A stretch of 63,422 nt of DNA, the filler included, from Lenisia limosa (taxonomy: Eukaryota > Protista > Breviatea), in assembly GCA_001655205.1 (NCBI GenBank). It is 9 parts of 9 records of this genome, joined end to end, with 100 filler letters (N's around TTAATTAATTAA, not from the genome) between each part and the next. Parts side by side here need not be neighbours in the genome. Positions count along the whole stretch, not along the records: positions 32,379 to 50,750 come from LPNZ01008162.1; 8 more parts are not named here. The stretch is one strand, 5' to 3'. The position numbers and the translations under genes were made by a program. Below the pieces are notes generated by a model. That model was given only the letters and a program-made list of their open reading frames with translations. It was not told where the DNA came from and ran no database searches. Positions 31,776 through 50,850 of the stretch are shown piece by piece (the first letter of the stretch is position 1; each line of letters begins with the position of its first letter).

Positions 31776-33297
31776 TGAGGTGCTTTAGTGTTCATTGTGT
31801 GATATTCTCTTTTTTTTTGTAAAGTAATGGTAATATTTAATTTTGATCCGAATCAATCATTTGCCAGGCCTAACCTTCTTAATCAACCCCATCCCCTATT
31901 CCTCAAGCAAACAACCAAAAGGGAAGCTGAATCGCAATGAAAAGCATCTACACACAAATCGGCGCTGTGACGGTACAAGGACCAAGACTAGCAAAGTCGC
32001 CCTTATCACGGGGGGTGAAGTCAACTACACTCTGGCCTGCACTATTGAGGCTGGCACGCAGCTATAGAGTGGATTAGATGTCATAAAAGATGAGTAGTCA
32101 GGCTTATATTTTTTATGCAAAAACCATACCCACTTAACACCTCCTTAACATCCCCCCATCTCCCAAACATTTAATCCATCAGCTTAACCCCCTATCATAA
32201 CCCCCCACCTTATCCGCTTCGGTAGTTTTACCGGAAAGGGTCAGGATCTCCGCAGCCGAAAGCTCGCGAGAATAGAGTNNNNNNNNNNNNNNNNNNNNNN
32301 NNNNNNNNNNNNNNNNNNNNNNTTAATTAATTAANNNNNNNNNNNNNNNNNNNNNNNNNNNNNNNNNNNNNNNNNNNNATCAACTACTACTACTCAAATC
32401 AAATAGCTCTCAGGCACGAATCCCTTTTGAATCCCGGACCGGACCTCTACCCAGCCATCGCTATCGGCCTGCGTTGTGAAATATTCGGAAATTTGTGACA
32501 CTTTGGAACATTCGGGATTCGCAGTAGGAATCCTAATCAAGTGTAGCAGTCAATGCTCCTCCCCCCCCCCCCNNNNNNNNNNNNNNNNNNNNNNNNNNNN
32601 NNNNNNNNNNNNNNNNNNNNNNNNNNNNNNNNNNNNNNNNNNNNNNNNNNNNNNNNNNNNNNNNNNNNNNNNNNNNNNNNNNNNNNNNNNNNNNNNNNNN
32701 NNNNNNNNNNNNNNNNNNNNNNNNNNNNNNNNNNNNNNNNNNNNNNNNNNNNNNNNNNNNNNNNNNNNNNNNNNNNNNNNNNNNNNNNNNNNNNNNNNNN
32801 NNNNNNNNNNNNNNNNNNNNNNNNNNNNNNNNNNNNNNNNNNNNNNNNNNNNNNNNNNNNGGGCCTTGAGGAGGCCTTCTCATTGGTGGTTTGTTGGACG
32901 TCTTGAAGGTAAAGAGGAATCAACGTTACAACCGCCTGGGTTTTATGTGGTACCAATGCGGGTTGAAGCGGTCTAATTACAATGACAGATTTCCTGTCAT
33001 TTCGAATATTTCGAATGGAACAATCTGAAATTGAGTGACATCTCCATTCTCACAAAGCAGAGTATATGATAGGTATTATGTGGCACGAGATGAGGTGTAT
33101 AACAGGATTGCCAAATTACGTATGAATGGAGTAATCGAACTGTTCTTCTAAAATCGTGGCTGTTTCATTCAACAAATTACAACATAAGGATACCACAAAC
33201 AACACCAGCAAATCCCCCCATCACCACCCTCCCATCACCACCCTCCCATTGCAGACCCACCCGTCCTAACATCAGTGTGATCCCAGAGATCTTTCAC

Positions 33298-36200
33298 TCA
33301 AAAAAACGAACCATTGCAGAAGTGGCGGCCATGTCCACTCCGATGGTGCTGAACGTTTCGGTGGTGTCCATTCCCGGCTCCTCCATTTCAAATTGAAGAG
33401 GCTACNNNNNNNNNNNNNNNNNNNNNNNNNTAGCGCTTCAGTACGAGGGGAAGTAAAGCGAAGGAAATTTCGATGAAGAATATTGGAGTAATAATAAACC
33501 GAATAATTTGAAATACAACCAACAAACAATGGTGCTTGAGAAATAACATTTTTCTTTCGGAGCGGAGAAGGGGGGGAGGGGATTTTATTGAAAATTGCAG
33601 TAGAACAATATTGACTCTCCAGAATTTCAACAGATATTGAGTGTGCCTACATTCCGTTTCAAAAGGGCCCCCTCACATCCTTAGCAGGCTTTTTGTTCTT
33701 TTTCCCTCCAGCACACAGCAGACAGACAGCAGCAATTGCCGCAATACCGAGAACCGCACCCATTCCTGCCTAATAGGTAAGTAAACTACCTAATACGGTA
33801 AGTCCACTACAAGTTACAGTTCTTCATTAATATTACATCAATAATATGTAACCCCAAACTTACCATAACAGGGGTTGATGACGTGGCAGAAGCAAAAATA
33901 CTGTCTTCTATATGGGTAAGTCAAGCATAGGCCTTCCTGGAAAGGATTTGTTAATATTATTATTCTCTTTTGAAGTTCAGTTCCCACCAGATGAGTTGTT
34001 GTCGTTGATTGAGTCCTCGCTTGTCTGAATTGTGTAAAGAGGTGAAAAGAGGGGTTTGTGTTTTGATTTTAACATAAAACAACTCTAATGGGTCAGAGCA
34101 GCCCCCTGCAAAGTATTCACAAGTACACAGTGACCCTAACCTCGCAAGCTTGAAGGTTGCAAGTGGTGGTATTGACTGGCTTTGAAGACTCGGGGCATGA
34201 CCAATCTGAAGTCTGCTGGAGTTAGATATCAATGTCTAAAAGCATGGAAACCAAGCGTTTTTCCAATTTGCCAATGTTAACCAAAGTGACACAACTTCTG
34301 GTCTAAGTAAGACTTTCCTTCGGTGACAATAACAATGGCCGATTTCACGATAAGCTCAATAAAAACCGCTATTTTACCGGTCTTGTTGTGACCGAAGTGA
34401 AGCCCTCAGTATAAGGCAGCCCTCACACCTCCTCCTTATTAACGTTGTCGTAACACGTGACGGTACGCGTCTGCAGACCGCCGCCGCATTCGGCTGAACA
34501 CTCCGAGTACGCAGCTATCGGGTACGTGGTTAAAAATGTGTTATGATATGGGCTTCCCTGAAGTCTCAAAAAAGACCGAATCTCCCGATAAATCCTAGAT
34601 AAATATCGATATTTAAACGGTCTTTTTCGGACCGCAGGGAAGTCCAAGTTATTAGGGCAGTGTATTGTGAGAAGTGTCCGCCCTATTCAAGCCCACCCCT
34701 CATTATTATCATCAAAAGGAAAGCCACCCTCCCATGATTATTAAAAGTACACACACACATACTATCAATATGTACCCACTAACAGGTGTTCCATTGGAAG
34801 GGGCATTGTTGCTCATTACAGACTTCCGAGGTTGTTGGCTTGGTAGAGGTGCACTTGCCGTCGCTTTCCTGTGCAATTAGAGGGCTTTTCTCAGGTCACA
34901 ATATTGTCTCAATATATCCTTGATAAATATCATATCTGCATAAAACCGAATGATGAGTATTCCTCCTACCAAGTCTCCATTGGAGGATCTACACTGCACA
35001 ACGCGAGTTCTCTTGCCCCCGCCACACGCTACGCTGCAGCCTTCCCATGATCCTGCTGTGTTAATTCCTGTCATATTCTGATGATGCATTTAATATCTTG
35101 ACATGGGAACATATCATATATAATATCTTGAGCATCATCAGAATATGCCAGGAACTGTCAAGATAAAATATGATATGTTCTCACGTGAATTATACCCACA
35201 AAGTTATGTTAAGATTGTTGTAACAATATATCATATCATACTTTTGAATTGTCAAATACTAACATTGACAAACCAATTTCCCCCCTTAGTACGTAATAAG
35301 GAGGAGTTGAGACATTGAAACCCAAAGTTGTTTTTTCAATATTTGATGTTTCATATCTCGAAAAAAAAAGCGATGTTAACCACACTTTTGCAGCTGAATT
35401 TTTATCCAAAAGACTTGGATCTGTTTGCATTTATCTACAAATTTTGTTTTGGGGACTGAATCTTTCTAAGGTACCACCAACCAGTAATCCAGTTAAAGGT
35501 GCAGGAGTGGGTGTTGCAAGCCTCAGAAGTGGCCGGCTTGACTGTAGTACATTTGCTGGCGCTTTGCTAAAAGAGAAATAAGTAACTATCCATATGATGT
35601 ATAGGATTATCTGGTACTGAACCAGTCTTCGATAAGATTACAATTACATTTCAGTAATAGGCCTGAGATAACCAAATTCAATTAATATGCCAATCTTCAC
35701 AGTAAAACTTAATAGCTCAATGGATACTGAATCGTGCTTACATAAATGATTCGGAATCGAAAAAAAGAGAACAATTACCCCAAAATACCAGGGTGCCCTC
35801 GAGAGTGCATGTGATTTCACGACTTCTTGACCCTGATCCACAGGTCCGACTGCAGCTCCCCCAGGTTCCTGAATATCTTAGTTTCTCAACCCCAGGTATT
35901 TGAAAGTTAATCAGCATGTCTCAAAACGGGTGGATGAAAAAGGACCTTTTATTATTATTTCTTGCATAAAAATTAACTATATCCATTTTTAAAATAAGAC
36001 TGACGCGTAGTGTCCTCTCGACCCCTACCAGATGTCCATTCATAGGTGCAGGCGTGGCTGTTGCAAGATTGGCTTTCAAGGGGCTTATCTCCAATGTTGG
36101 TCACACATTTCGAATCGGCAAGCTGCGAAATGAGAGCTTAATTGTGTTAGCTCTATGTCTTTGTTTAGAAAAAGCACTAAAGCGGAATTGGCAATGCACC

Positions 36201-39200
36201 CCTCCATCCCATACAACTTGATACAATGACACTTGTTACAATTGCAAATGTAAACAGAAACACTAACCACCTACCAGCTCCCCCTCAGATTCACACGTGA
36301 CTGTTCTGTCTCTGGTCCCGCCATTGCAAAGGGCTGAGCACTGGCCCCATGTGGCTACATGGATGATGGGGGTCTTGTGGTGGTGTTTGTGATAGTGATG
36401 TTTTTGACGATCTTAAAGTGGTGTTTGTGTTGGTGATGTTAACAATCAGAAACAATAAAAATAAGTGGTTCAGCCTTTACAAATATCGGATATCAAGTGA
36501 AATTTGAACTGTTTATAATGAATTGCCCTCATACACGTGACCCATTCATAGTGGCAGTCTTTCAATTCGCAGCCAAGCTAGAAAATCAGCCATTATTACT
36601 CAGACAATAGATCAAATTTATCAGTTTAAATTATTAACTCTAAATCACCTCATAAATCCACAAAGTTCATAAATTGCATTACAACTTGATATTGCATTCA
36701 GGGATTCACTTGATTTTCTCGATAAATCTTCGAAAACTATCGATATTTTACCGGTCTTTTTTTAATCGAAGTGAAGCCCTAATTGCATCATGATGCCTTC
36801 AGATTCATATTGTTTTTGACGAACGCCAGCCACGTCACCCCTCTCCCACAGTGTCTTTGAATTTGTACAAATGAGCGCATTGAGCATCATCTACAATTTC
36901 GTCCAAAACAACACAGTCAATTGTCCGGGTCTGTGTGCCAACACCACAGTTATTTGAACAAATACTCCAAGGGCCTTGAATGGTGACTTATACAAGACGG
37001 CATTTTCAAAAATGTGTCCAAAAATCGAAACAAGTCAATTCGGTTGAATCCATTTTGAACTAATGTCTCGATATCCACCCACCAGTAACCCATTTTGGGC
37101 TGGTAGAGCATGGGTCTTCATTGCACGCTTCAGATGCGACTGGCTTCTCGTTCAGACAAAGGCCGGGAGTCTGGGTTGTGAGTGTGTTATTTCAGGATGT
37201 TATCTCTCGATTACAAACATATTGTGTAAACGTAATGTTGGACCAAGTCCTATCACATCATGTCATAAATGTGATGGAAGGCCAAGCCCATTGTCATATC
37301 ATAAATCTATTATTTTTTAGCCCAAATACGGCGGTACCAGCAAGGTTGACACAGGTGACTGTTCGGGTTCTAGTTCCTCCGGCACACGTGGCAGAACATG
37401 CGCTCCAGTTGCCTGGGGGGTAAGGCGTGTGGGAGCGTGGGTGTGTGGGCAATAATAAGGGCTTCCCTAAGGTCCAAAAAAGACCTGTAAAATATCGATA
37501 TTTATCGAAGATTTATCGAGAAATTCAGTCTATTTTGGGATTGAAGGGACGCCCAGGCAATAATGGACATTTGTGTGAAGTAGTTGGGGTGATTGAATCT
37601 CCAATTTGCTGGGGAAGAACTGTCCTCCTCCTACTGATTTTCCAGTAGTTAGGGCAAGTGTGCGTGTTGCAATCTTCAATAGCAACTGGCTTGGTCTTTG
37701 TGCAGTACGATGAAGATACCTGCAGTTCATGATTTTTCGATACAGAAGATTTCGTCCCCTCCCTAAACAGGCCTCAACATATCCATCTTGACCAAACACC
37801 TTTTGTGGTGTTCCAAAATACCAACAAATGCGTATCAGACATAATTTGCCATTTTAATGAGGTTTTTAGGCACATTTAGTCAATTTGGAACGATTTTCCA
37901 AAATTTTACAATGTCAGAAATATGGTATTACAATGTTCGACCTTTATACAATTCAATTCTCAAAAACAAATCATTTGAAATGCAGTGAAACAGAATAGGT
38001 AAAAGGCTTATGTTGTTCAAAGTAGTCACCCTAGGTCACCCCCCCCCCACAGAAGTCATATCAGAGGTTCTCATGCACTTCACGGTTCTTGATCTTGTTC
38101 CGCCATCACATTGTTGGTTGCAATCGGTCCAGGTAGCTGAGAGTAAGTTTTGCATTGGGGATGCAAAATGATTGTATAAAAAGCTCATACTCCTTGTATC
38201 TGCTCAAGTAATTTGAGCATGCTTGATACTATTTTCTACTCCTTCCATCATACTTTCTACTCCTTCCATCATACTTTCTACTCCTTCCATCATACTCAAA
38301 TATGCACATCTTGAGATCACCCACATACTTACACTCCATTCATATGCACCACAGGCAGTGGGACACTGTTCAGTTGTAGCTGGTTTGGCTCCTTCACAAA
38401 GAGACTCATCAATCTTTGGTGGTAATGATGATGATGATGATGATTACGATAAGTGGCGTTGGGATGATGATGATGATGATGGTGGTGGTGGTAATGGTGA
38501 TGATGCTAAAGGTCCCCCCTACCAGTTCATTTGCACTGTCTTTGCAGAGCACCTCCCTAGAGTGCGTGCCAGCAGAACCACAAATGGTGCAGTCTCCCCA
38601 CGGTCCTATGGAGAGGGGATTTGTCAATGAAACGCTATACAAGGAGATTAGTGGCCTTTTAAATCTTGAATATTTTTATTAACTACAATACATTCTGAAA
38701 TTAACTTGTTAACATCAATTGGCAGTGATGGATAAAACCTTCACTTAGATATCCAAAATGTCAACACAGATTATCATTTGAAAAGAAGCTAAGTGTGATA
38801 TGGCAACCTTTGCATGGGGAAAAGACCTCACCTTTCCACCAATTAGTGTCTGCACAATCTGGAGTGCAAGCTTGCGACGGCTGCTCCATGGGGCACTTGG
38901 ATGACGGGTTTCCTAATATGGTAAGTACCGCACACAGCCAAATGAAAGTTGCCTAATTTGGAAAATGATATACAGTTTGCTTGAGGTGATATGTTGTAGA
39001 TTTCTTCCTGCAACCCCCCCCCCCCCNNNNNNNNNNNNNNNNNNNNNNNNNNNNNNNNNNNNNNNNNNNNNNNNNNNNNNNNNNNNNNNNNGTAGTTTTC
39101 CTTGAATTGGATGCCTGCTTCTCCACAGTTACCCACACAGGCACCCCAGGTGGCGTCAGAATTGCTGAAATGTCAGTTATAAAGCTTGAAATGTTAGGCA

Positions 39201-42200
39201 AAACGTTGATACCAGTAAGACTTATAAATGGACACGCCAAACTTATCTATCACCAATTTCCTACAGAGTATAGCTGTCTTGGTCGGCCACAATTTGATCC
39301 AGACACTCCCTATTGTATTCTCCAGCGCAGACTTAAATGGTAAAGGCATACAATTTCATAAATGGCTACACATATAATATATTGTTTACCCCATAGAGAG
39401 GAAACCAAATGATTATCGCAGTTTATACATATAATTATGTACTTTATATACTATGATGATACATTTTAAAATTCTTCCTTTGCGCAGGTTTAAATAAGCA
39501 TCTTTTGTACAAAATCTTTTAAATCAGAATGGATGTTACCCAGATCTTTCAAAACAATGGTACACAAAGATCTACAATCACGTATATGTTTCTCCACTAT
39601 TATTTCATACCTTTTCCATCGGCACAATACTCTCCATTCAACTTATTGTACTAAAATGTGAAAATAAAAATGGATTCCAAAACAAACATAACAAGTAGAG
39701 TCAGAGTATAGCTGAAAAACACAGAACTTAACAAATCGTAACAATAAAAACAGTGATATGAGTCTGTGCAATCATGCTACCCCTCGCCCACATACGACAC
39801 AGTAATGCTACCCCTCGCCCACATATGACACAGTAGTGCACTGCCCAGTTGAAGGGTGTTGGCATTTCGGTGAACTGCAAGTTCCGGTTACACCGCCATC
39901 GCATCTTGTGTAGTAAGTTGTTGGTGTTCATGCCAGGTCTTGTGATGTTTGTGCCACTATATCTATCGCAAACTATGGACATGATGCAATCACACTATGG
40001 ACACATGAAATCTAGTATGGACATGATGCAATCAGTATTCATCACACACTATGGACATGATACAATCAGTATTCATCATACAGTAACGGTATTCATAGCG
40101 TTGAGTGAGACATCAATGTGGCCATCCCATTCTAAAACCAAACTTACAGTTCAACTCCTCTTTCGTGGCACATCACATTGTGACTGATGCATCTTCCCTA
40201 AAAACGTCATGAGAAGTCCTTTGAGGTAAACCACCGCAATATAATTAAACTTTAATCCCTATACACAAGATTCAAATTGAATTTGATAAACGCATTTGTT
40301 CTCTTTTTCATCGAAATTAGTGGATCTGATTGCTTTGGTAATAATAAACCTTGGTGTTGAATAGTCATTTTAACACTTGGTTTGGCTATAAGAAGGCACT
40401 AATGTCCTGAAAAGAAACAATTGACTTTGAAATTATTTTCACAAGTTGTAGGACTATTGTTACAAAGAACGCCATTTTTGACACTTGACTCAAGTGATAA
40501 CATAGTAGTGCTTTCCCGTGAATAGTCCCCACTGACCTTGAAACATCGTCCTTGTGTGCCGTGAATATCTGTGCATGTCGTACCAGCAAGTTTATGCTGG
40601 GCTATATTCAATTAAAATGATAACTAAATTATAGATGATGATGTTCAATGTCAAGATGAGTAAACAAGATTATACTCCTAAGCCGTCCACGCAAATGACA
40701 GAGATGCTGATAGTAGCAGTAAAATACCACAATATGGCAATGTAACCACCTCAAATCAGACAAAATATCTCCTCTTCCATAAATTCTACCATAAGGACCC
40801 CATGCATACGGAAGCAAACGGGGCCGGTGCCAGTGCATCGATTGGAAAGGTCACAGAAGTCCAAGCTGCTTGACTGGCAAACTGTGCCCTTGGCTTGAAA
40901 CTTACAGTTCACACAGCAAGATCCTTCTTTGTGCCTGCAATATCAGAATAAAATATGACTACAAATTCTGTTGTTTGTAAATTGTAGCAAACATCACAAT
41001 TTTTATTTGTAAGAGGATCCAAGTACAAAAAAATTGAATTTCTTTTGTTGTCACCCCCATACACTTTAGCTGCTCGTGTTTGTCACGCCAATATTATTCA
41101 TGGAAATTTCCTTTGTTTTACTCCCCCATACACACACTCCGCTCCGGGCTTGTACTTGCAGGTGATGGGGTCGCAACATGGGCATTCTGACTCGTCCGGT
41201 CCGCAGTCACAATCCTCCGCTATAAAATTAGTGACTTTTGAAACCAAAGCCAAAAACATAAGAATATAAAAAAACTAAATTTCAGAACACATCCACCTTA
41301 AGAGGACAGGGAATGGAAAATAGGGTGATAGGTTACACGTATTTCACAATAATAACCAGCCACCTACAGGGATCGATTCTTCCGTCACCGCAAACAGTTC
41401 CGGGCAGGTTTGAAGGTTCTATAGTGGTGAAAATACACATTTTAACAGCCTTCATCTTCATCTTCAACAATACTTGTTTTTACACAATCCAATATGTTGT
41501 TTCCATGTCCACTGGAGCAGGGTTTCTAATAGGACAGTTTTTCATTCTCTTCTCGCGTCATATTGAACCCAATGTCACTTTTGTCTTAACAACTTCCCTT
41601 CCACTGGAAGAAGAAAAGCCACCCCCACCTGAAGTTGAGCCGAAGCATGCCAAACGACTGTCCAATTGTGTGCCCTAAAGTTGCGTGACAACTTAACAAG
41701 TGATCCCAAAATTTGGGAAAAGTCTATGTCTTAGGCGAGTTTTTATTTGAGTTTTGACAATTCTTGCTGACTCATCACCTTTTCCATCCGAAACAACCCA
41801 GGTGTCTTATTATGTACACACCCAAATAATTCTCACAAACTTGAGCTGCAGTAAATGTGCAATTGTCCATGAATGCATCATTATAGAGACACTAAAAGAG
41901 CGTGAAGAGAACGGATGTGACAATTAACTTTTTTGTTTGTATCATAGCTACTTACTCAAAAGATAACCCAAGGCGGAGAAAACCTTCTTTTGGATTCCCT
42001 GTGAATCCAAAAACCAATTAACTCCAAAATATCGATAATGTTGATAAAAAAGATGCCAAATTGTCTTACGTTATATTTATCAGTCGAATGGGGAACTCCT
42101 GCGATTCTATGGATCTGAGGCAATAAGAAAAAGATTAGAGACTGGGGTATTTTCCCTTATACATACTATACGCATGTAGATTGGGTTTGAATCGCAACAG

Positions 42201-45200
42201 TATTTGCCCTTATATACAGTATTTGCCCTTATATACAGTATTTGCCCCCCGTACAGATCTCGCGAAGTAGAGTGCCGGAATCAACTGAGAAGGCGATCCG
42301 TGTGCGTAAGCCATTGTGGTCACAGCCCTGAGTTTTGCGGGTGAAATGAGAATATTTTTGACACAGTTGAAAAAGCACAGCGGTTTGGGAAGGAGTATAT
42401 TTGAATTAAGAAATTTTCGGGAGGTATTCTGTCCATTCACCCATCTCACGCTGAGCACATAGCATTGACCGTTTCATGGTGGAATTCTGGGTCGAGGGGT
42501 GAAAATCCCACTCCACTAAAAAGTAAATTGAGTTTAAGCGCAGTGTTCTTTGGAAGAAAGTTAAATAACCCAAAACACTGTCCAAAGTAATCTGGATTAT
42601 TCCTGGTTGTTTGAAATAGATTTGAAAATTATACCCCCAAGTAATAAGGTACTTTCGCTACTTATCACAAATTTGAACCATCAGTATTGCTTATAAACGT
42701 GATAATGTGAACAGCTTAGCCTGGTGAACTCTTTCCCCCTTATTGTTCATGCCAAGAATACAATAATTTCAGGATCAGTTTTGCCGTCAAATCCTACATA
42801 AGGTACATGAAGATGTCTCCTGTCTTTCGATGAGAGGCGGCATAGGTGTACACACTAAACAATGAGCAAAAATCGTCATCAACATTCCAAAGCTAAGGAG
42901 TGATAACAAATATTACTTGTAATACGTAATACTGTAGATTAATAACACAAATTGCACTAATACGAAAAACTTCACTTGAATGGTGTACACCACATTGCAC
43001 TTGAATGGTGTACAACACACTGCACTTGAATGTTGCACTTGAATGGTGTACAACACACTGCACTTGAATGTTGCACTTGAATGGTGTACAACACATTGCA
43101 CTAAATCAAGGGCTTACGGGGGGGATTGGTATGGAGAATAGAACGAGGTCAGATAAGACCCGGCTTGTGAATCTGAAGTAGGTTAGGGTGGCCAGGGATG
43201 GTAAAAATGTGAATAACAAATTGACACCTGAATTAAGTTGAAATCTGAATTATGAATTAAGTTGAAATCTGAATTTAGTTGACATCTGAATGACAGTATG
43301 AAAACGAAATAAATCTGTGGAATCATAATTTGCATGAGATCAATAAAAACAAACACCCGAGACAAATCAAAACCCCAGAAATTAACTCCAACCTGTAAGG
43401 ACGGTATTAGATGCAAGCTTCAGAATACACTCATAAGAAATGCTGCCCCAAGTTGAACGCTTCTGCAACGGACATAAATAGATCTTCAATCAGATATGAA
43501 AAAGAACAGTAGACTATCATAATATACTGAAGATATCAAAAAACTCAGCCATTATTTGATCAGAGTGAAACCCTAAGCATTTATCGATGGTGAAATTAGG
43601 CAAATCCTAACATAGTGGCTATATGAATTGTCTGATCAATCATAAACAAACCACGAAGACAAGCCCAAATTTATACAAAACAAATCGTTGATCAATGTTG
43701 ATTATATTACGATTCAGTCCAGTGTTGTGACTTTTTATAAAACAAAGAATATGGTTACCCACCGCCATGACTTCATTGATGGTGGTGATAAGAATGATGT
43801 TGTGGTTCCAGCATGATGCACCGGACTGACCAAATCGGATCTGGTCGGCAACCAGATCAACCTGTGGGGTCAAGGTTATAAAAATAGTATTGTATTCTTG
43901 TGAATTTATCTGACATTAATATAATATACATATCATATAACTACAAATATCAGGCTCTAAACGATTCATCATAAAAATAACTGATCACCATTCCAAGATT
44001 TCAATCAAAAAAAAATCGAAACACCAATTAGCATAAAAAATATTGCAGCCTGTTACAACACCATGTAAGGTGAAGGAACCGCACTAAAAGAGCGGTGAGA
44101 TCACAATATCATTTCAGCATGTGCATATTTTACCCCAAACGGTAATGTACTTGTTTGTAGCTCTTCTGGACTTGGAGTATTCCTCTACCATGGCAAGGTA
44201 CTAAAGCAGTCAAGGGGTTTGAATCCGCGATAATCTGGGGGTCACCATTATTGAATTTCAACAACGGTAGTATGGTGACACCATTTATAACAGATGGAAA
44301 TATGTTATTTCCTCACAGGATATCCGGGTACCATAAATCTCAGCCCAGATAATCGTAGTTATGTCCAGTTTACAATAATCACAAGCTATATTGTGTTTTG
44401 CGGTTTTACCCATGATTGCAAGTTCGCAGAAATACAAAATGTTTCGAATGTCCAAATATGACTCACTTCGATGTCTGCTTTAGCAGGAGATTGTGTGATA
44501 ACAAAGCGTGACGGTTCATCCCTCTGGAATGTAATATTTATATCAACGTATGTGGAAGTAATAAATGTCAAGATACATATCTCATACATATTATGTGCAG
44601 TCATAAATATTCATCAATGAAGTCTTTTTCAATATAATACTACATGTTCTGAGGATAATAAAATGACATACTCTAGTTTGGTTGTTGAAAATTTCATAAT
44701 AATGGTGCTGATATTAAAATGATTTCGAGAGTAGTAAAATGATAAATTTTAAAAGGTTCATCCAATAGAGAATAAAATTTTTGGACAAATATGTCGAAGT
44801 TTGTGGGTTGACAAACCTTGATTGGGGAAGGAATCTCCTGTTCAATTGTATACTCCATACCCTATACAATTATACAATTAGTATTACTTGAAAGTGCCAA
44901 TATCAACAATAAAAGTGCTACACCGCCAACATCAACAATAAAAGTGCCGGTTTTAATGTCGTCGCAAAGAACCATGGAAACGACCGGGCTGGAAACGTCT
45001 TGTTCACCGACAGCCGTCTGAGGGGTGAGAGGGGACGATGAAGTGTTTGGTCAGACAGGGTAAGACTAGATGTGGGTGTTTCCTTTTGTGTAGGCAAATG
45101 GATCTCTATGTGTACGGCAAAAAATGAATAGTGTGGACGGGTGTAGGCACCACCAAGCCCACTCTCGTAACATGACCCTTGTAAACGCATTTAGATACGT

Positions 45201-46125
45201 CTCTTTCGTTCCTAGTTATTTCTCCATTGACGGAGGTGTACTCAGCATAGTCTTCTGTGAAGAGCTATGTGGAGTAAGTCAAAGAGTTTCTTGTTCAATC
45301 TAAGATTTCCCAAATTACCCAACATATATAATATATAATATGATATATAATACTATATGATATATAATATTATATAGTATAATATATAATATATACTATC
45401 ATATATAATGTGCATAAATAGTATAGTATAGCATATACTATATCATATGTAGACACGTTTTCAATGCCCCCTCCAACCTCATCATTGTGGAGCAAATCAA
45501 GTTCGAATGACTACCAAGTTAGTTCTGGAAAGCCGCACTACATAACAGTCTATATATCACGTATCATTCATAGTGTCTCCGGAAACCCTAGAAATAGTGT
45601 GCCGCCTGATGGTCACTATCAGGCTGAGAACAAAGTGTATTTAAAAATGATGGGGAAGTTAGGGCGAAATGAAGATATTAATCAAATTGCCAAATTTATA
45701 ATTTAGTAGGTCAGAATACAAACGCAATAATTGTTGCTGTTCTTTTTTGGAACCTGTATTCTATTCTGGCATAAATCGCATTACAATTGGACTGTCATCT
45801 CGCATCATATTTACTTCAATGAATCTGGTTCAAAATAAATGGTTAACCACCGCCAATACAATATCTTTGTCCTTTGTCATACCTGTTGGAAAGCCTCCAA
45901 CTTCAGAGTCAAAGAGGATCCGTCAACATCCCTCGTTCCAGTGTCGCTCTAGCATGTGAATATTGCATATTTCATATTTTCAAGTATCACAAGAGACCAC
46001 ACCGTTTATTTGGTATGAGTGAACGATTCATTCACCCTAACTCTAGGATAAGTGTATCCACCCCTACCATGATATTGACATTGACGGTTTCTTTCAATTC
46101 AGCGAAGGTCGTAGCGGCTGCAAGA
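33298..46125 (-). CDS. ADAM-family type I membrane protein: prodomain, M12B-like region, disintegrin, Cys-rich region, ~9 ADAMTS-type TSP1 repeats, TM and short tail; start and last exon approximate
   Basis: Prodomain: [25 protein letters not shown]...CVYKGHV and [18 protein letters not shown]12B start: [11 protein letters not shown]...[10 protein letters not shown]. Disintegrin: [10 protein letters not shown] / [28 protein letters not shown] / [35 protein letters not shown]1, e.g. [23 protein letters not shown]: [18 protein letters not shown] followed by KKNKK. Confidence 0.85.
34549..34646. mobile_element. MITE family A copy in ADAM intron
   Basis: tgggcttccctgaagtctcaaaaaagac...gtctttttcggaccgcagggaagtcca. 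Confidence 0.8.
36700..36782. mobile_element. MITE family A copy (internally deleted) in ADAM intron
   Basis: agggattcact...cgataaatcttcgaaaactatcgatattttaccggtctttttttaatcgaagtgaagcccta. Confidence 0.75.
37458..37555. mobile_element. MITE family A copy in ADAM intron
   Basis: agggcttccctaaggtccaaaaaagac...gtctattttgggattgaagggacgccca. Confidence 0.8.
42970..43102. repeat. Intronic minisatellite (tgcacttgaatggtgtacaacaca-type units, ~5-6 copies with internal deletions)
   Basis: Direct reading of repeated tgcacttgaatg units. Confidence 0.85.
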
Positions 46126-48090
46126 GATTAGCCATTGTTCTTTGTACACAATTTGATATTTATCTTGTTTGTTGTTAATCCATAATGCTATGTCTCCAAA
46201 ACAAGTGCGGATTATGTTAAAACGTCAAAAGTTCGGATAATGACGTGTCATATGTGTACTATTACGGAGACATTAATGTCTGTCCAAACATCCAAACATC
46301 CAATCATTATGGCATCTAAACCTGTTTTGGAGACAAAGCATTATGGATAAACAACAAAAAAAAATTATCCGAACTTTTGACGTTTTAACATAATCCGCAC
46401 TTATTAATTGCACCAATATCCAATTCATCATAGTCTGCCCCTCTTGAAATTTCAAGACGCCTATTATACTCGGCCAGTTCAAGACGCCTATTATACTCGG
46501 CCAGATACATCTATATTATTTCTCATTGCTATATATGTTACACGTCCCACCAACCCAATAACAGGCTGAACCAAAGTACGAAACGCGCCACTGTCATCCT
46601 TCTATAAACATTAGAAGAAATGTTGCAGAAGGGAAAATGAGTGATATTTGTGTAATAACACTGTGAATTTATTTTCAAACGGAACCACAACATCCATCAG
46701 TCCTCCTTTAATAGTTTGAACTTCTTAAGAAAATTTTCTGGAAAGAAATCGAGAGTGAAGGCAGAATAGTCCAGAAACTGTGTTTACTGTCACCTTATGA
46801 TTGGCAATTACAAAAACCTAAATCAAAACAAATTATTTTGAGAACATTAGATAATTAAATAATTGCAGTGCTTTGCCACTCAACCTGCTTTGCCTCGGTT
46901 GGATCAGCATGCGGAGTTGGCGGATAAGCGGAATGGCAGCAAGGTGAAACAGAAGCCAACCAACCACTGTATTAAATTTGGAGATTATTAATATCAGCTT
47001 ACGCGGATAGGGAAATGGAAAAGGCGAGTTCCAATAGCAGTTCTCAAGATGAGCGCTTAAATCAGGATACAGAAAGTGCTGCCAGCGACTTTTCTTACTG
47101 CACTACAGCTTCAATAAATATTTAATAGCACAATATATCACGCTAGAGAGGTGAAAGAGTGAAAGAGACCCAGATTCCATGTAATCGCTAATAATAGATC
47201 AATAGATCATTTTTATGTGAACCTTACTACCCTACTCAACTAATTTGCTTAAATCTTTAGATTACTGTATTCTGTAACTACAAATAAATTATCAAGTAGA
47301 TAATTTGAGGCGTTAGATAAGAGAAAACTTGATCTTGCTACTGAAGAGGTCTCCTCCCTTGCTCTCCTTCAATTTAGCATTTACAAGAAGACAAAAAAAC
47401 TTCAGTAGAATAAGGTTTGTGTTTGGCCGTGGCTCCCCACTGATCCCCGCCAAAACCATTGTAACTCCCATTTTTTTTATTTTTTTTTTTTATCCTTTTC
47501 TTGTTATATTTTATCCAAAAAAAAAAAGAATTTGTTGTCCAAAGTAGCGAGTCAACACGCAAAGAAGTATTACTTGGTTTTTTTCTTCATGTACAACGAT
47601 GCGTTCAATGCGCAATATAACTGATATTTCCAGCCAACATGGCGAGTTTTATGAGGGCGCCTGTCGTGTGCCCAAGGAAACGCAAAACACGAAAAACACA
47701 GGTGGGTGTGTCCTATGCTTGATTTTTTGCTTTCCTTTCTTGTGTTAAACAACGAGAAAACAAATATACCATATGCATCTTTCATGGATATCACTCGTGC
47801 ATATTGGACAACATCTCAAAGTTGGTTCATTTGGTAATAAGTATCTAGAGGTGATATAATGGGCATTAACTTGCATTCTCCCCCTCATTCACTCCACAAC
47901 AGAGTTGATTTTGTGCTTTTTTTTGTTCCACAAAGTTTCCAATTTTTACGATGCGTTGCTGCAGAAGAAGGGAGGGGAACGGCCTGTCCTTGGCTTTGTT
48001 TGTTTTGTTTTTATCAACTCTTGTTTATTATCAGACAACAGAGTTGATTTTGGGTATTTTTGTGTAATAAATTTTCTCCTCACCCTCCAG

Positions 48091-50668
48091 CAAGTTGAAG
48101 ATGAGGCAGACATGCGATACGCCATTTCGACTAAGGAGTTTAACGCAATGATTGATGAGGAGGACGACGAACCGAAACAGAAGGACGAGGTATAATGGGG
48201 GATGACGAGCCGAAACAGAAGGACGAGGTATAATGGGGGATGACGAGCCGAAACAGAAGGACAAGGTATAATGGGGGGATTTGGAATGGTGTGTATGCCG
48301 GGGAGGCACGCAGATAGCTGTGCACACAGTGTTGTAAGGCAAATGTTTGGGTGAATTAATATTATACTATAATCCAATATCTCGTATAAGCATGGTGTGG
48401 ACGGCTTTGGTCAGATACAACCTTATTTTGTATTTCTCATTGCTTAATATTCCCCTAACACAGCAGATTGACGCCTCGCTCACGGGGGACGCTGTCAAAA
48501 AGTCCATTCTCCCACAGCGTTTGAAAAGACCAAAGGTTGGGGAAGGTTTTTGATCGCGCCTCAATTTGTTCCTTCATAAACTATCTTCGCGTATACATCA
48601 TTGTTCCACATTTGGTTTTGAGGTTTTGTTTTTCTCTTGGACGGGTTCGGCCAAAGACCTCCTTTTTTCTCTTTCCTACATACTTCACCCCACCCCCCGA
48701 CTTTTTTGTTTCANNNNNNNNNNNNNNNNNNNNNNNNNNNNNNNNNNNNNNNNNNNNNNNNNNNNNNNNNNNNNNNNNNNNNNNNNNNNNNNNNNNNNNN
48801 NNNNNNNNNNNNNNNNNNNNNNNNNNNNNNNNNNNNNCTATTTTTTTTTGTCATTAATTTTCCATTTTACCCCCCCCCCCCAGCTCACGTCAGACGATCT
48901 AAGGGATCCGACTGAAGGACTTGATATTTTGCTGAAGCAGGCGAAACGGCTGAAACTTACCGGCAAATATGTTGGGAGGGGGGGGTACTAGACAGCTATG
49001 TTGGGTACTAGACAGCTATGTTGGGTTGAGAGAGAGTGCATGTATGTGAACTAATTTGCGCCAGGTTCAAGATTTCGGTAACATTCTTTCGACTTTTGAC
49101 GACTGGATGTTAAGGTTATTCCCCCATGCCAGGTTTGAATGGTTCCAATAAGACATTACGCATGACTTTTCAATACTTGTTCATTTACCTGTCTTTTGAA
49201 GCATGGGTGAATCTCTCTCTATGTTTTAGTTTCGACAGTCCTTGTCAAATCCTAGTATAATTGTGCTCTATTGCGGTCGTCCATAGCAAACCTTATTAAA
49301 ATGGTATAGTGATACGATCTTTTCCTTTAGATTTCTAATATAGTGTATTATTTCTCTTGTTCAAAATAACAAACTTACGAGCCCAGTCCGAAGGAGTCAG
49401 TGGAGCGACTGGCGAAGGAGTCGTCCACACGTTCAGCCAGAGTTTGAGGGGGAGCATTTGGTCAAATGCTGGGGGTCCCATTGTTCCAAAAAGATGACTC
49501 GATATCCTCGAATATCGATGTATTCACGTTATTGTTCGAACCGAAGGAATTGGTGCAATGACGCTTTTTAGTAAAACTGGGCTCTAATTGTAGTTCATTA
49601 CAGAAAGCTGTGCTAATTTTAGTTCAATACAGAAAGCTGTGCTTTATTGAGTGTCACTATAATTTGACCATAATCAATATCATAGAGCTTTGGCGAGATC
49701 AGCCGTTTATTTTTGATTTCAAGATATTGGTGATATCAATTCAGGTTCAACATCACAATTGATACCCTGATATCTTCAGGACATTATGGAAAGAATCCGC
49801 CTGGACTCATCGCTGCTATACGTACCAGTGAGGGGATTTGCCAACACATAGCCCAAGACCCCCCATACATAATCCATAACATTGCTTTCTTAGCGTGGGG
49901 TATGGAGTGCCATTGTTGGAGAACGGCAGAGGTTTTACGGTCTCACTGAGAGTCGGCATGCTAGGGCTAATAAGGAGAAATATATGAAAAAAGAGGGGGC
50001 TGTCTTTGCTCGAATTTTGAAGTGGGGGGGGGGGGGTANNNNNNNNNNNNNNNNNNNNNNNNNNNNNNNNNNNNNNNNNNNNNNNNNNNNNNNNNNNNNN
50101 NNNNNNNNNNNNNNNNNNNNNNNNNNNNNNNNNNNNNNNNNNNNNNNNNNNNTCCTTCGTTTTTTTTTTCTCATATTCTTGATCAAAATTTCCTTCGTTT
50201 TTTGGGATGTGGTGCTGTAGATGACTGGCCTGGGTTTGCTTGTATTGTTGTTTACAACCCTTGCTCCAGCCAGCAGAATTGATTTTCGGCATTTTTGTTT
50301 TAAAACTTTCCATTTTTACCCCTTAGACCGTAGTTCCAGAGCCGTCATTGACTGAAAAGGTCTTCAACTCCTCGCAGCCGGAACCTGAGATACCTGGTGG
50401 GTATGGATTAATGATTCCATGACCCCCGTCCTCTCCACCAATAGAGATCATATTCGCAAGTGATTTAAACAATAAGGGAATAATGATTCATCTTGATTGT
50501 GAATATGCTTTAATAAGGAAGCCTCATCGACATTGGCAATTATGTCTTTTCTATTTGGCAAACAATGTCTTTTCTATCTAAAAGTTAACAGAAATGGCGG
50601 AATTAGCACCAGAGAAGCCTGACATCATTGAGGACTCCGATGATGGCGAATGGGAAGTTCAGCTTGGT
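48091..50668 (+). CDS. TIPIN: TIPIN/Csm3/Swi3 replication fork protection protein; start and 3' extent uncertain
   Basis: KLTSDDLRDPTEGLDILLKQAKRLKLTGKY / VQDFGNILSTFDDWMLRLFPHARFE resembles the Swi3 domain (L...GL..L...K.KG....DL..LL..Y..W.H.LFP...F). Confidence 0.7.
48315..48445 (+). repeat. Repeat family C (~130 bp), intronic
   Basis: gcagatagctgtgcac...gtaaggcaaatg...gggtgaattaatattatactataatccaatatctc...ggacggctttggtcagatacaacctt...tttctcattgc. Copies at ~17950-18070, ~8215-8290 (reverse), 46490-46530, 52630-52675, 56770-56830, 59960-60035. Confidence 0.75.
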
Positions 50669-50850
50669 AGGCTGCGCTGTCTTTGGGCTTTGTTTATTTT
50701 GTTGTTCCCAATCCTCGTGTGTAGTTAGCCAACGGAGTTGATTTGGGCTTNNNNNNNNNNNNNNNNNNNNNNNNNNNNNNNNNNNNNNNNNNNNTTAATT
50801 AATTAANNNNNNNNNNNNNNNNNNNNNNNNNNNNNNNNNNNNNNNNNNNN

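Follow-up and report, generated by a model that had tools for sequence, protein, structure and literature searches.

A putative membrane-anchored gene combining an ADAM-type disintegrin with an array of ADAMTS-type thrombospondin repeats

The locus presented here raises the question of whether a single gene may combine the disintegrin of an ADAM, the thrombospondin type 1 repeats (TSRs) of an ADAMTS and a transmembrane (TM) anchor, and whether the product of such a gene would be a protease. It is located in a window of 63,422 nucleotides (nt), which consists of parts of nine records of the Lenisia limosa assembly GCA_001655205.1 joined end to end; the analysis covered positions 32379-50750 of this window, that is, the part from record LPNZ01008162.1, with a G+C content of about 33-44%. 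An initial annotation, made from the sequence alone, had placed the hybrid at positions 33298-46125 and described it as an adhesion or shedding receptor of a protist-like genome. The reading that we consider fairly probable is that of one gene, whose product of about 1050 residues would span the membrane as a type I protein and be an adhesion or receptor pseudoprotease. Its architecture is a variant combining known modules and falls under the definition of neither the ADAMs nor the ADAMTSs.

No long open reading frame (ORF) was found on either strand of the record. On the minus strand, clear protein motifs are seen in numerous short stretches free of stops, and these two observations together are an indication of an intron-rich eukaryotic gene. 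The stretches can be joined into a chain of 41 GT-AG exons, or about 1050 codons, in which the phases agree and no in-frame stop occurs. It extends from an ATG at 46597 to a stop codon at 33661-33659. The exon boundaries were chosen by hand, and the phase consistency is partly built in. The proposed series of a prodomain, a disintegrin, about nine TSRs and a TM segment can indeed be read as one phase-consistent gene, and all 41 exons would then belong to one transcript. The limits first given to the gene were revised at both sides. The first coding exon sits 470 nt upstream of the annotated start and outside the annotated range, and the gene most likely ends at the above stop codon, with positions 33298-33404 perhaps belonging to the next gene.

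The presence of a true disintegrin of the ADAM/snake-venom type is well supported by Pfam and PDB. In detail, the second and the third of the three disintegrin exons (table 1) match Pfam PF00200 at positions 4-36 (E 2.7e-5) and 33-72 (E 7.5e-7), respectively. The third exon also matches snake-venom disintegrins and ADAM22 in PDB (E 9e-6 to 2e-3), and its look-alike in the ESM Atlas is a Disintegrin cluster (0.94). The C-G-D-G start of the domain is encoded by the small first exon, the region of the integrin loop has an extra cysteine (Cys), as in the ADAM/P-III xCD type, and the three exons join by GT-AG in phases 1, 1, and 2.

The 41-residue disintegrin exon was used as a query against 1.84 billion representative proteins, a search in which an E of 0.001 requires about 35 bits. 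All 43 matches were prokaryote-like proteins with 10-16 tandem disintegrin repeats. These proteins are 200-1800 residues long, some of them also have Reprolysin-like domains, and all animal ADAMs rank below them in a search with a disintegrin exon of animal type. No eukaryotic sequence of this library reached about 35 bits, which indicates that it holds no close ortholog of the exon; the proteins of this genome seem to be absent from it as well. A loose tblastn search gave only noise. Two loci from a metagenome scan (LWDU01041928.1 and AJXC01011427.1) were rejected as relatives, being bacterial contigs with ORFs of a tRNA synthetase and a secretion ATPase, and the match to them is a chance one of 27 residues.

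The TSR array is the second element that is read clearly. The best Pfam family for the first-half exons of TSR2-TSR9 is TSP1_ADAMTS (PF19030), with E values from 7e-4 to 1e-9. The layout of a repeat consists of an exon of 80-86 nt, running from phase 1 to phase 0 and carrying the motif W-x-x-C-x-x-x-C-G-x-G-x-x-x-R-x-x-x-C, and an exon of 85-94 nt, running from phase 0 to phase 1 and carrying the motif C-...-K-P-...-C-...-C-...-W. In TSR5 the internal intron is displaced and the long exon spans profile positions 4-45; when held out, this repeat was recovered at 1.7e-8 by profiles made of six or seven other repeats. All six Cys positions are retained in TSR2-9, and the identity from repeat to repeat is 27-47% for the protein and 47-60% for the DNA. 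The low protein identity shows that these are old diverged copies and not an artefact of the assembly. The profiles of the gene's own repeats detected nothing further on either strand. TSR1 to TSR9 lie back to back, with introns of 101-429 nt and no other coding exons between them. The exon map has no Cys-rich or spacer region after TSR1, with the 226-nt interval between TSR1 and TSR2 not separately scanned with the respective profiles.

The first repeat, TSR1, is divergent and its identity is weakly supported. Neither of its halves was matched by Pfam. With the own-gene profiles the first half scored 6.6 bits and the second -0.6 bits, although the second can be aligned over its full length by its Cys/Pro/Trp pattern. 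Among the 30768 residues of the six-frame translation, the motif W..C.{2,3}CG is present at five places, all of them first-half exons of TSRs, that of TSR1 included, and its chance expectation in the whole piece is, as a rough estimate, about 0.04. An assembly gap at 39027-39091 cuts the 3' end of the first TSR1 exon or its intron. The exon is open into the gap and, judging from the other repeats, would have lost its last 7-13 nt or so together with the donor. The second half starts at either of two alternative acceptors, 38912 or 38952. The distance between the starts of the two halves is 252 nt, including the estimated gap, and 184-417 nt in the other repeats; order, strand, and spacing across the gap fit one repeat.

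At the C-terminal end, the second exon of TSR9 ends in phase 0 and is followed by a juxtamembrane exon and by the exon of the TM helix. The mean Kyte-Doolittle hydropathy of this helix, taken over 19 residues, is 2.38, and the basic tail KKNKKPAK comes next. The distance from TSR9 to the stop codon is only about 480 nt, within which both of these exons are contained. The AATAAA at 33589 is one of only seven on the minus strand in 13.5 kb.

Table 1. Features of the putative ADAM-TSR gene and of its 3' flank (positions of the window)
Feature	Position	Strand	Basis or remark
First coding exon, ATG and signal-peptide-like hydrophobic stretch	46597..46555	-	Hydrophobic run after an ATG, located by a scan; read by eye
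Putative prodomain exons	46117..46068, 45948..45883, 45264..45163, 45017..44922, 44861..44817	-	One weak Pfam match and motifs seen by eye
Linker exons	44523..44467, 44234..44151	-	Strong splice sites, both phase 0
M12B-like candidate exons	43861..43763, 42892..42798, 42515..42450, 42114..42070, 41891..41841, 41691..41629, 41511..41474	-	Phase-consistent GT-AG chain
Disintegrin exons	41418..41368, 41219..41132, 40934..40810	-	Pfam, PDB, ESM Atlas; xCD loop
Cys-rich segment exons	40601..40537, 40197..40148, 39904..39812	-	Splice sites and phases; pattern seen by eye
Candidate TSR1 (divergent), first half	39164..39092	-	W..C..CG motif, own-gene profiles
Candidate TSR1 (divergent), second half	38912..38832	-	Own-gene profiles
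TSR2-TSR9, 16 exons	38605..34141	-	Pfam TSP1_ADAMTS on first-half exons
Juxtamembrane exon, 4 Cys, phase 0 to 1	33936..33864	-	Sole phase-consistent link between TSR9 and the TM exon; strong sites
TM helix, basic tail, and stop (33661-33659)	33765..33659	-	Hydropathy, reading frame; alternative donor 33677
AATAAA	33584..33589	-	About 70 nt 3' of the stop
ORF	33298-33404	-	Alternative 3'-terminal exon (phase 0) or, more likely, start of the next gene (ATG 33386, donor 33312)

The first coding exon, with its signal-peptide-like stretch, has the donor G/GTTGGT (slash at the splice point) in phase 1, which matches the exon starting at 46117. The identity of the following exons as a prodomain is weakly supported. 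Segment 45109-45264 aligns with positions 64-93 of the 93 positions of Pfam Pep_M12B_propep at E 0.22, that is, below the cut-off and within one exon, and the ADAM-like motifs C-x-Y-x-G-H-V and Y-x-I-E were seen by eye in the prodomain exons (four exons). The prodomain junctions are all GT-AG and in phase 0. The second linker exon contains P-C-H-G, a site resembling a Cys switch by eye, and no RxxR furin site is present in the two linker exons.

Between the linker and the disintegrin, the seven M12B-like candidate exons total only about 155 residues, with several strong splice sites. Their order by eye is like that of an ADAM catalytic domain, that is, a V-D-L-V-A-D start, an A-M-C-S stretch, and a C-V-K-T-K-P end before the disintegrin, and region 43861-41474 may thus have a metalloprotease-like fold. 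An additional exon (43462..43393) was dropped from the chain due to a phase misfit. Pfam reprolysin gave zero matches on any of the candidate exons at E≤10, in an exon-by-exon testing which is insensitive, and the PDB search with the first of them produced only noise. No H-E-x-x-H is present in the three minus-strand frames of 46400-41300, a gap-free stretch from the prodomain to the disintegrin, nor is the longer catalytic motif of the ADAMTSs, HEXXHXBGBXHD. In addition, two candidate remnants of the zinc helix each lack the Glu and at least one His. Based on the missing motif and on these remnants, the M12B-like region is read as present but degenerate, and the protein is probably non-catalytic.

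The protein could still be imagined as an active membrane sheddase, with an exon of the zinc site that was missed in the model or split by an intron. An active protease as its ancestor is suggested by the putative prodomain and the Cys-switch-like site. On the contrary, the lack of H-E-x-x-H in a gap-free stretch, the Glu and His missing from both remnants, and the absence of a furin site make an active enzyme extremely unlikely. The shedding role, which had been proposed initially together with adhesion, is not supported, as no HExxH exists in any frame from the prodomain to the disintegrin and no reprolysin profile matches.

The disintegrin is followed by a Cys-rich segment of about 70 residues with 11 Cys, the opening of which resembles by eye the Cys-rich domain of ADAMs. 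Pfam ADAM_CR did not match the Cys-rich exons even at E≤10; similarly, there was no Pfam match to an EGF-like module and no EGF-like exon after the segment. The junction with the TSR array, from 39812 to 39164, can be spliced in frame by GT-AG in one way, for which the acceptor is good and the donor weak. The start of TSR1 is placed on the ADAM side of gap 39027-39091, so the adjacency of the ADAM and TSR parts is independent of the scaffold join. The ADAM part lacks its own TM and EGF exons, and the TSR part its own signal peptide.

This junction is also where the locus might be divided into two adjacent genes of the same strand, that is, a short secreted ADAM-like gene ending after exon 39904..39812, and a membrane protein with TSRs only, similar to THSD7 or to a properdin with a TM segment. 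The model of one gene would in that case be an artefact of how the exons were read. Translation past 39812 meets a stop immediately, the donor at this position scores -2.8, and TSR-only membrane proteins are common in invertebrates (PMC5446238). However, TSR1 is not preceded by a Met-led signal peptide and starts in phase 2 at a good acceptor. The 650-nt interval between 39812 and 39164 contains no AATAAA, in contrast to the one found 70 nt past the final stop, and its length does not exceed that of other introns in the chain. An ADAM-like gene without stalk and anchor would itself be unusual. On this balance the two-gene arrangement is regarded as doubtful.

The introns of the chain also contain tandem repeats, namely (ATG)27, 21 bp x3, 38 bp x2.8, and a 31-bp duplication (positions 38425-38505, 38233-38296, 42995-43102, and 39774-39839). 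The duplication is a copy of the donor region of exon 39904..39812.

When Pfam, which the initial annotation had suggested, was run exon by exon, Disintegrin and TSP1_ADAMTS were recovered, Pep_M12B_propep appeared only at the above E of 0.22, and Reprolysin did not appear at all. The minus-strand series stands in part, with most of its domains borne out. The disintegrin (by Pfam and PDB), eight TSP1_ADAMTS repeats, and the TM helix with its basic tail were confirmed. The prodomain, with its E value and motifs seen by eye, and the divergent TSR1, with nothing in Pfam and the low own-gene scores, are weak. The M12B-like and Cys-rich parts were not recognized by Pfam at E≤10, nor the former by PDB.

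Five runs of N interrupt positions 32379-50750 (32573-32860, 33406-33430, 39027-39091, 48714-48837, and 50039-50152). Poly-G, or poly-C on the other strand, abuts the gaps at 39014-39026 and at the edges of 32573-32860 and 50039-50152. It looks like an artefact of two-colour sequencing at contig ends, in which case the bases adjacent to the gaps would be unreliable. The poly-G edges of several gaps suggest a short-read draft scaffold.

The locus might also be a decaying or otherwise non-functional copy, or one distorted by the draft assembly; the model, with its degenerate protease region and five N gaps edged by poly-G, would then not stand for a working protein. The failure of profiles to recognize the metalloprotease-like and Cys-rich parts agrees with such an explanation, as do the poly-G runs at the gap edges and the lack of a close relative of the disintegrin exon among the 1.84 billion representative proteins. 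Yet about 1050 codons over 41 exons contain neither a stop nor a frameshift, and the six Cys positions of TSR2-9 are kept at 27-47% identity, which fits purifying selection. Furthermore, catalytically dead ADAMs are normal functional proteins. Decay or distortion is therefore judged to be improbable.

Some further points weigh against the reading of the locus as one gene for a membrane-anchored pseudoprotease. With boundaries chosen by hand, the phase agreement of the 41 exons is weaker than it appears. At the 39812 to 39164 junction, the phase fit amounts to a 1-in-3 coincidence only. TSR1 is weak, and its frame is interrupted by the 65-N gap 39027-39091. The M12B-like and Cys-rich exons are without any profile support, and an HExxH split by an intron is the remaining loophole in the absence of the zinc site. 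Finally, the search with the disintegrin exon found no ortholog that shows conservation of the architecture.

According to the one-gene reading, the protein would begin with a signal peptide and with a prodomain of the ADAM type, which has a Cys-switch-like site and no furin site, and would continue with a shortened and degenerate metalloprotease-like region, an xCD disintegrin, and a short Cys-rich segment. Nine ADAMTS-type TSRs would then take the place of the Cys-rich/EGF stalk of ADAMs. The C-terminal end would be made up of a small juxtamembrane part with Cys residues, a single TM helix, and a short tail of basic residues. Such a protein would cleave nothing. Comparable to ADAMs 11, 22, and 23, which are inactive, it would serve as a receptor for adhesion or ligand binding, with the disintegrin head and the TSR array held away from the membrane and binding partners of the matrix or of the cell surface. 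The function as a non-proteolytic receptor is deduced from this layout.

At the 3' flank, gap 33406-33430 lies beyond the stop codon of the preferred model. An alternative donor (GAT/GTGAGG, at 33677) could splice to the ORF at 33298-33404, just past this gap, in which the acceptor region would be concealed. An SH3-like exon is found at the edge of the piece (32397-32549, minus strand), and since it lies on the same strand, the ORF is more likely the start of the next gene than the end of the ADAM-TSR gene. Rfam gave only noise below its threshold.

As far as the origin of the gene is concerned, nothing in the piece itself points to a protist, and the initial description of a protist-like genome finds no basis in the sequence. 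TSP1_ADAMTS-type repeats, an ADAM prodomain with a disintegrin, and symmetric phase-1 module boundaries look, as an impression, animal-like. An invertebrate animal was taken as the most likely source of the gene, and the contig is unlike human DNA in its tiny exons and in an architecture without a human counterpart. It might be argued that the gene belongs to a non-animal or very early-branching lineage and represents an independent assembly of a membrane-anchored ADAMTS-like protein, with an ADAM head and a TSR array. This is considered very unlikely. If it were true, the combination of ADAM and TSRs would have arisen more than once or would predate the split of ADAM and ADAMTS.

The ADAMs are defined by a prodomain, a metalloprotease, a disintegrin, a Cys-rich and an EGF domain, a TM segment, and a tail (PMC1867822). 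The predicted protein shares with them the PF00200 disintegrin with the xCD loop and the type I TM anchor with a tail. Its likeness is greatest to ADAM11/22/23, in the signal peptide, the putative reprolysin-type prodomain, the disintegrin, the TM segment with its short tail, and the probable loss of the zinc site, with ADAM22 among the PDB matches. In contrast to ADAMs, it has neither an EGF-like module nor an ADAM_CR or reprolysin domain recognizable by Pfam; only about 70 Cys-rich residues precede TSR1, and nine TSRs stand between the head and the membrane.

The ADAMTSs are secreted, contain a central TSR, a Cys-rich domain and a spacer, have no EGF, TM segment or tail, and carry the catalytic motif HEXXHXBGBXHD (PMC4448532). 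The TSP1_ADAMTS-type repeats, eight of which are clear, and the putative M12B-type prodomain are common features with the gene under study. On the other hand, it is TM-anchored, its TSRs lie back to back without the Cys-rich/spacer part that follows the central TSR of ADAMTSs, its disintegrin is a true one, and the zinc motif is absent. A phrase search of the literature for a natural membrane-anchored ADAMTS returned only an engineered construct. The claim that the locus fits neither family is thus upheld by the lack of EGF and spacer, the TSRs in the position of a stalk, the TM anchor, and the true PF00200 disintegrin.

Compared by domain layout, the closest published precedent is the sea-urchin egg bindin receptor EBR1 (Kamei and Glabe 2003), itself an ADAM/ADAMTS hybrid. 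In EBR1, an M12B propeptide precedes reprolysin and Cys-rich domains, to which nine TSP1 repeats are directly attached, and many CUB-TSP1 units come thereafter, with an intact zinc signature and no TM anchor described; in its species-specific CUB-TSP1 region the TSP1 units are reported as single exons (PMC13672419). The gene examined here differs from EBR1 in having no CUB domain, a TM anchor, and two exons per TSR. CUB exons could not be fitted into the short stretch from TSR9 to the stop.

THSD7A/B and semaphorin-5 also have TSP1 repeats in a row, after which come one TM helix and a short tail. The membrane end of the predicted protein is similar to theirs, but their heads consist of a Sema domain or of none, with neither a prodomain nor a disintegrin. 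Class-5 semaphorins are noted in a survey of TSR proteins (PMC7663992). The combination of a disintegrin, TSRs, and a TM segment is absent from the surveys of cnidarians and sea slugs (PMC5446238, PMC7663992), and no published match for this mix of domains was found. Provided that the exons form one transcript, an ADAM head, that is, a prodomain and a true disintegrin, would be carried on a membrane-anchored TSR stalk, a layout outside both families, and the product would be a candidate non-proteolytic adhesion receptor. As lineage-specific shuffling of TSR domains is common, this would be interesting rather than startling to a specialist. Together with EBR1, it would add a data point on the shuffling of ADAM/ADAMTS architectures in invertebrates.

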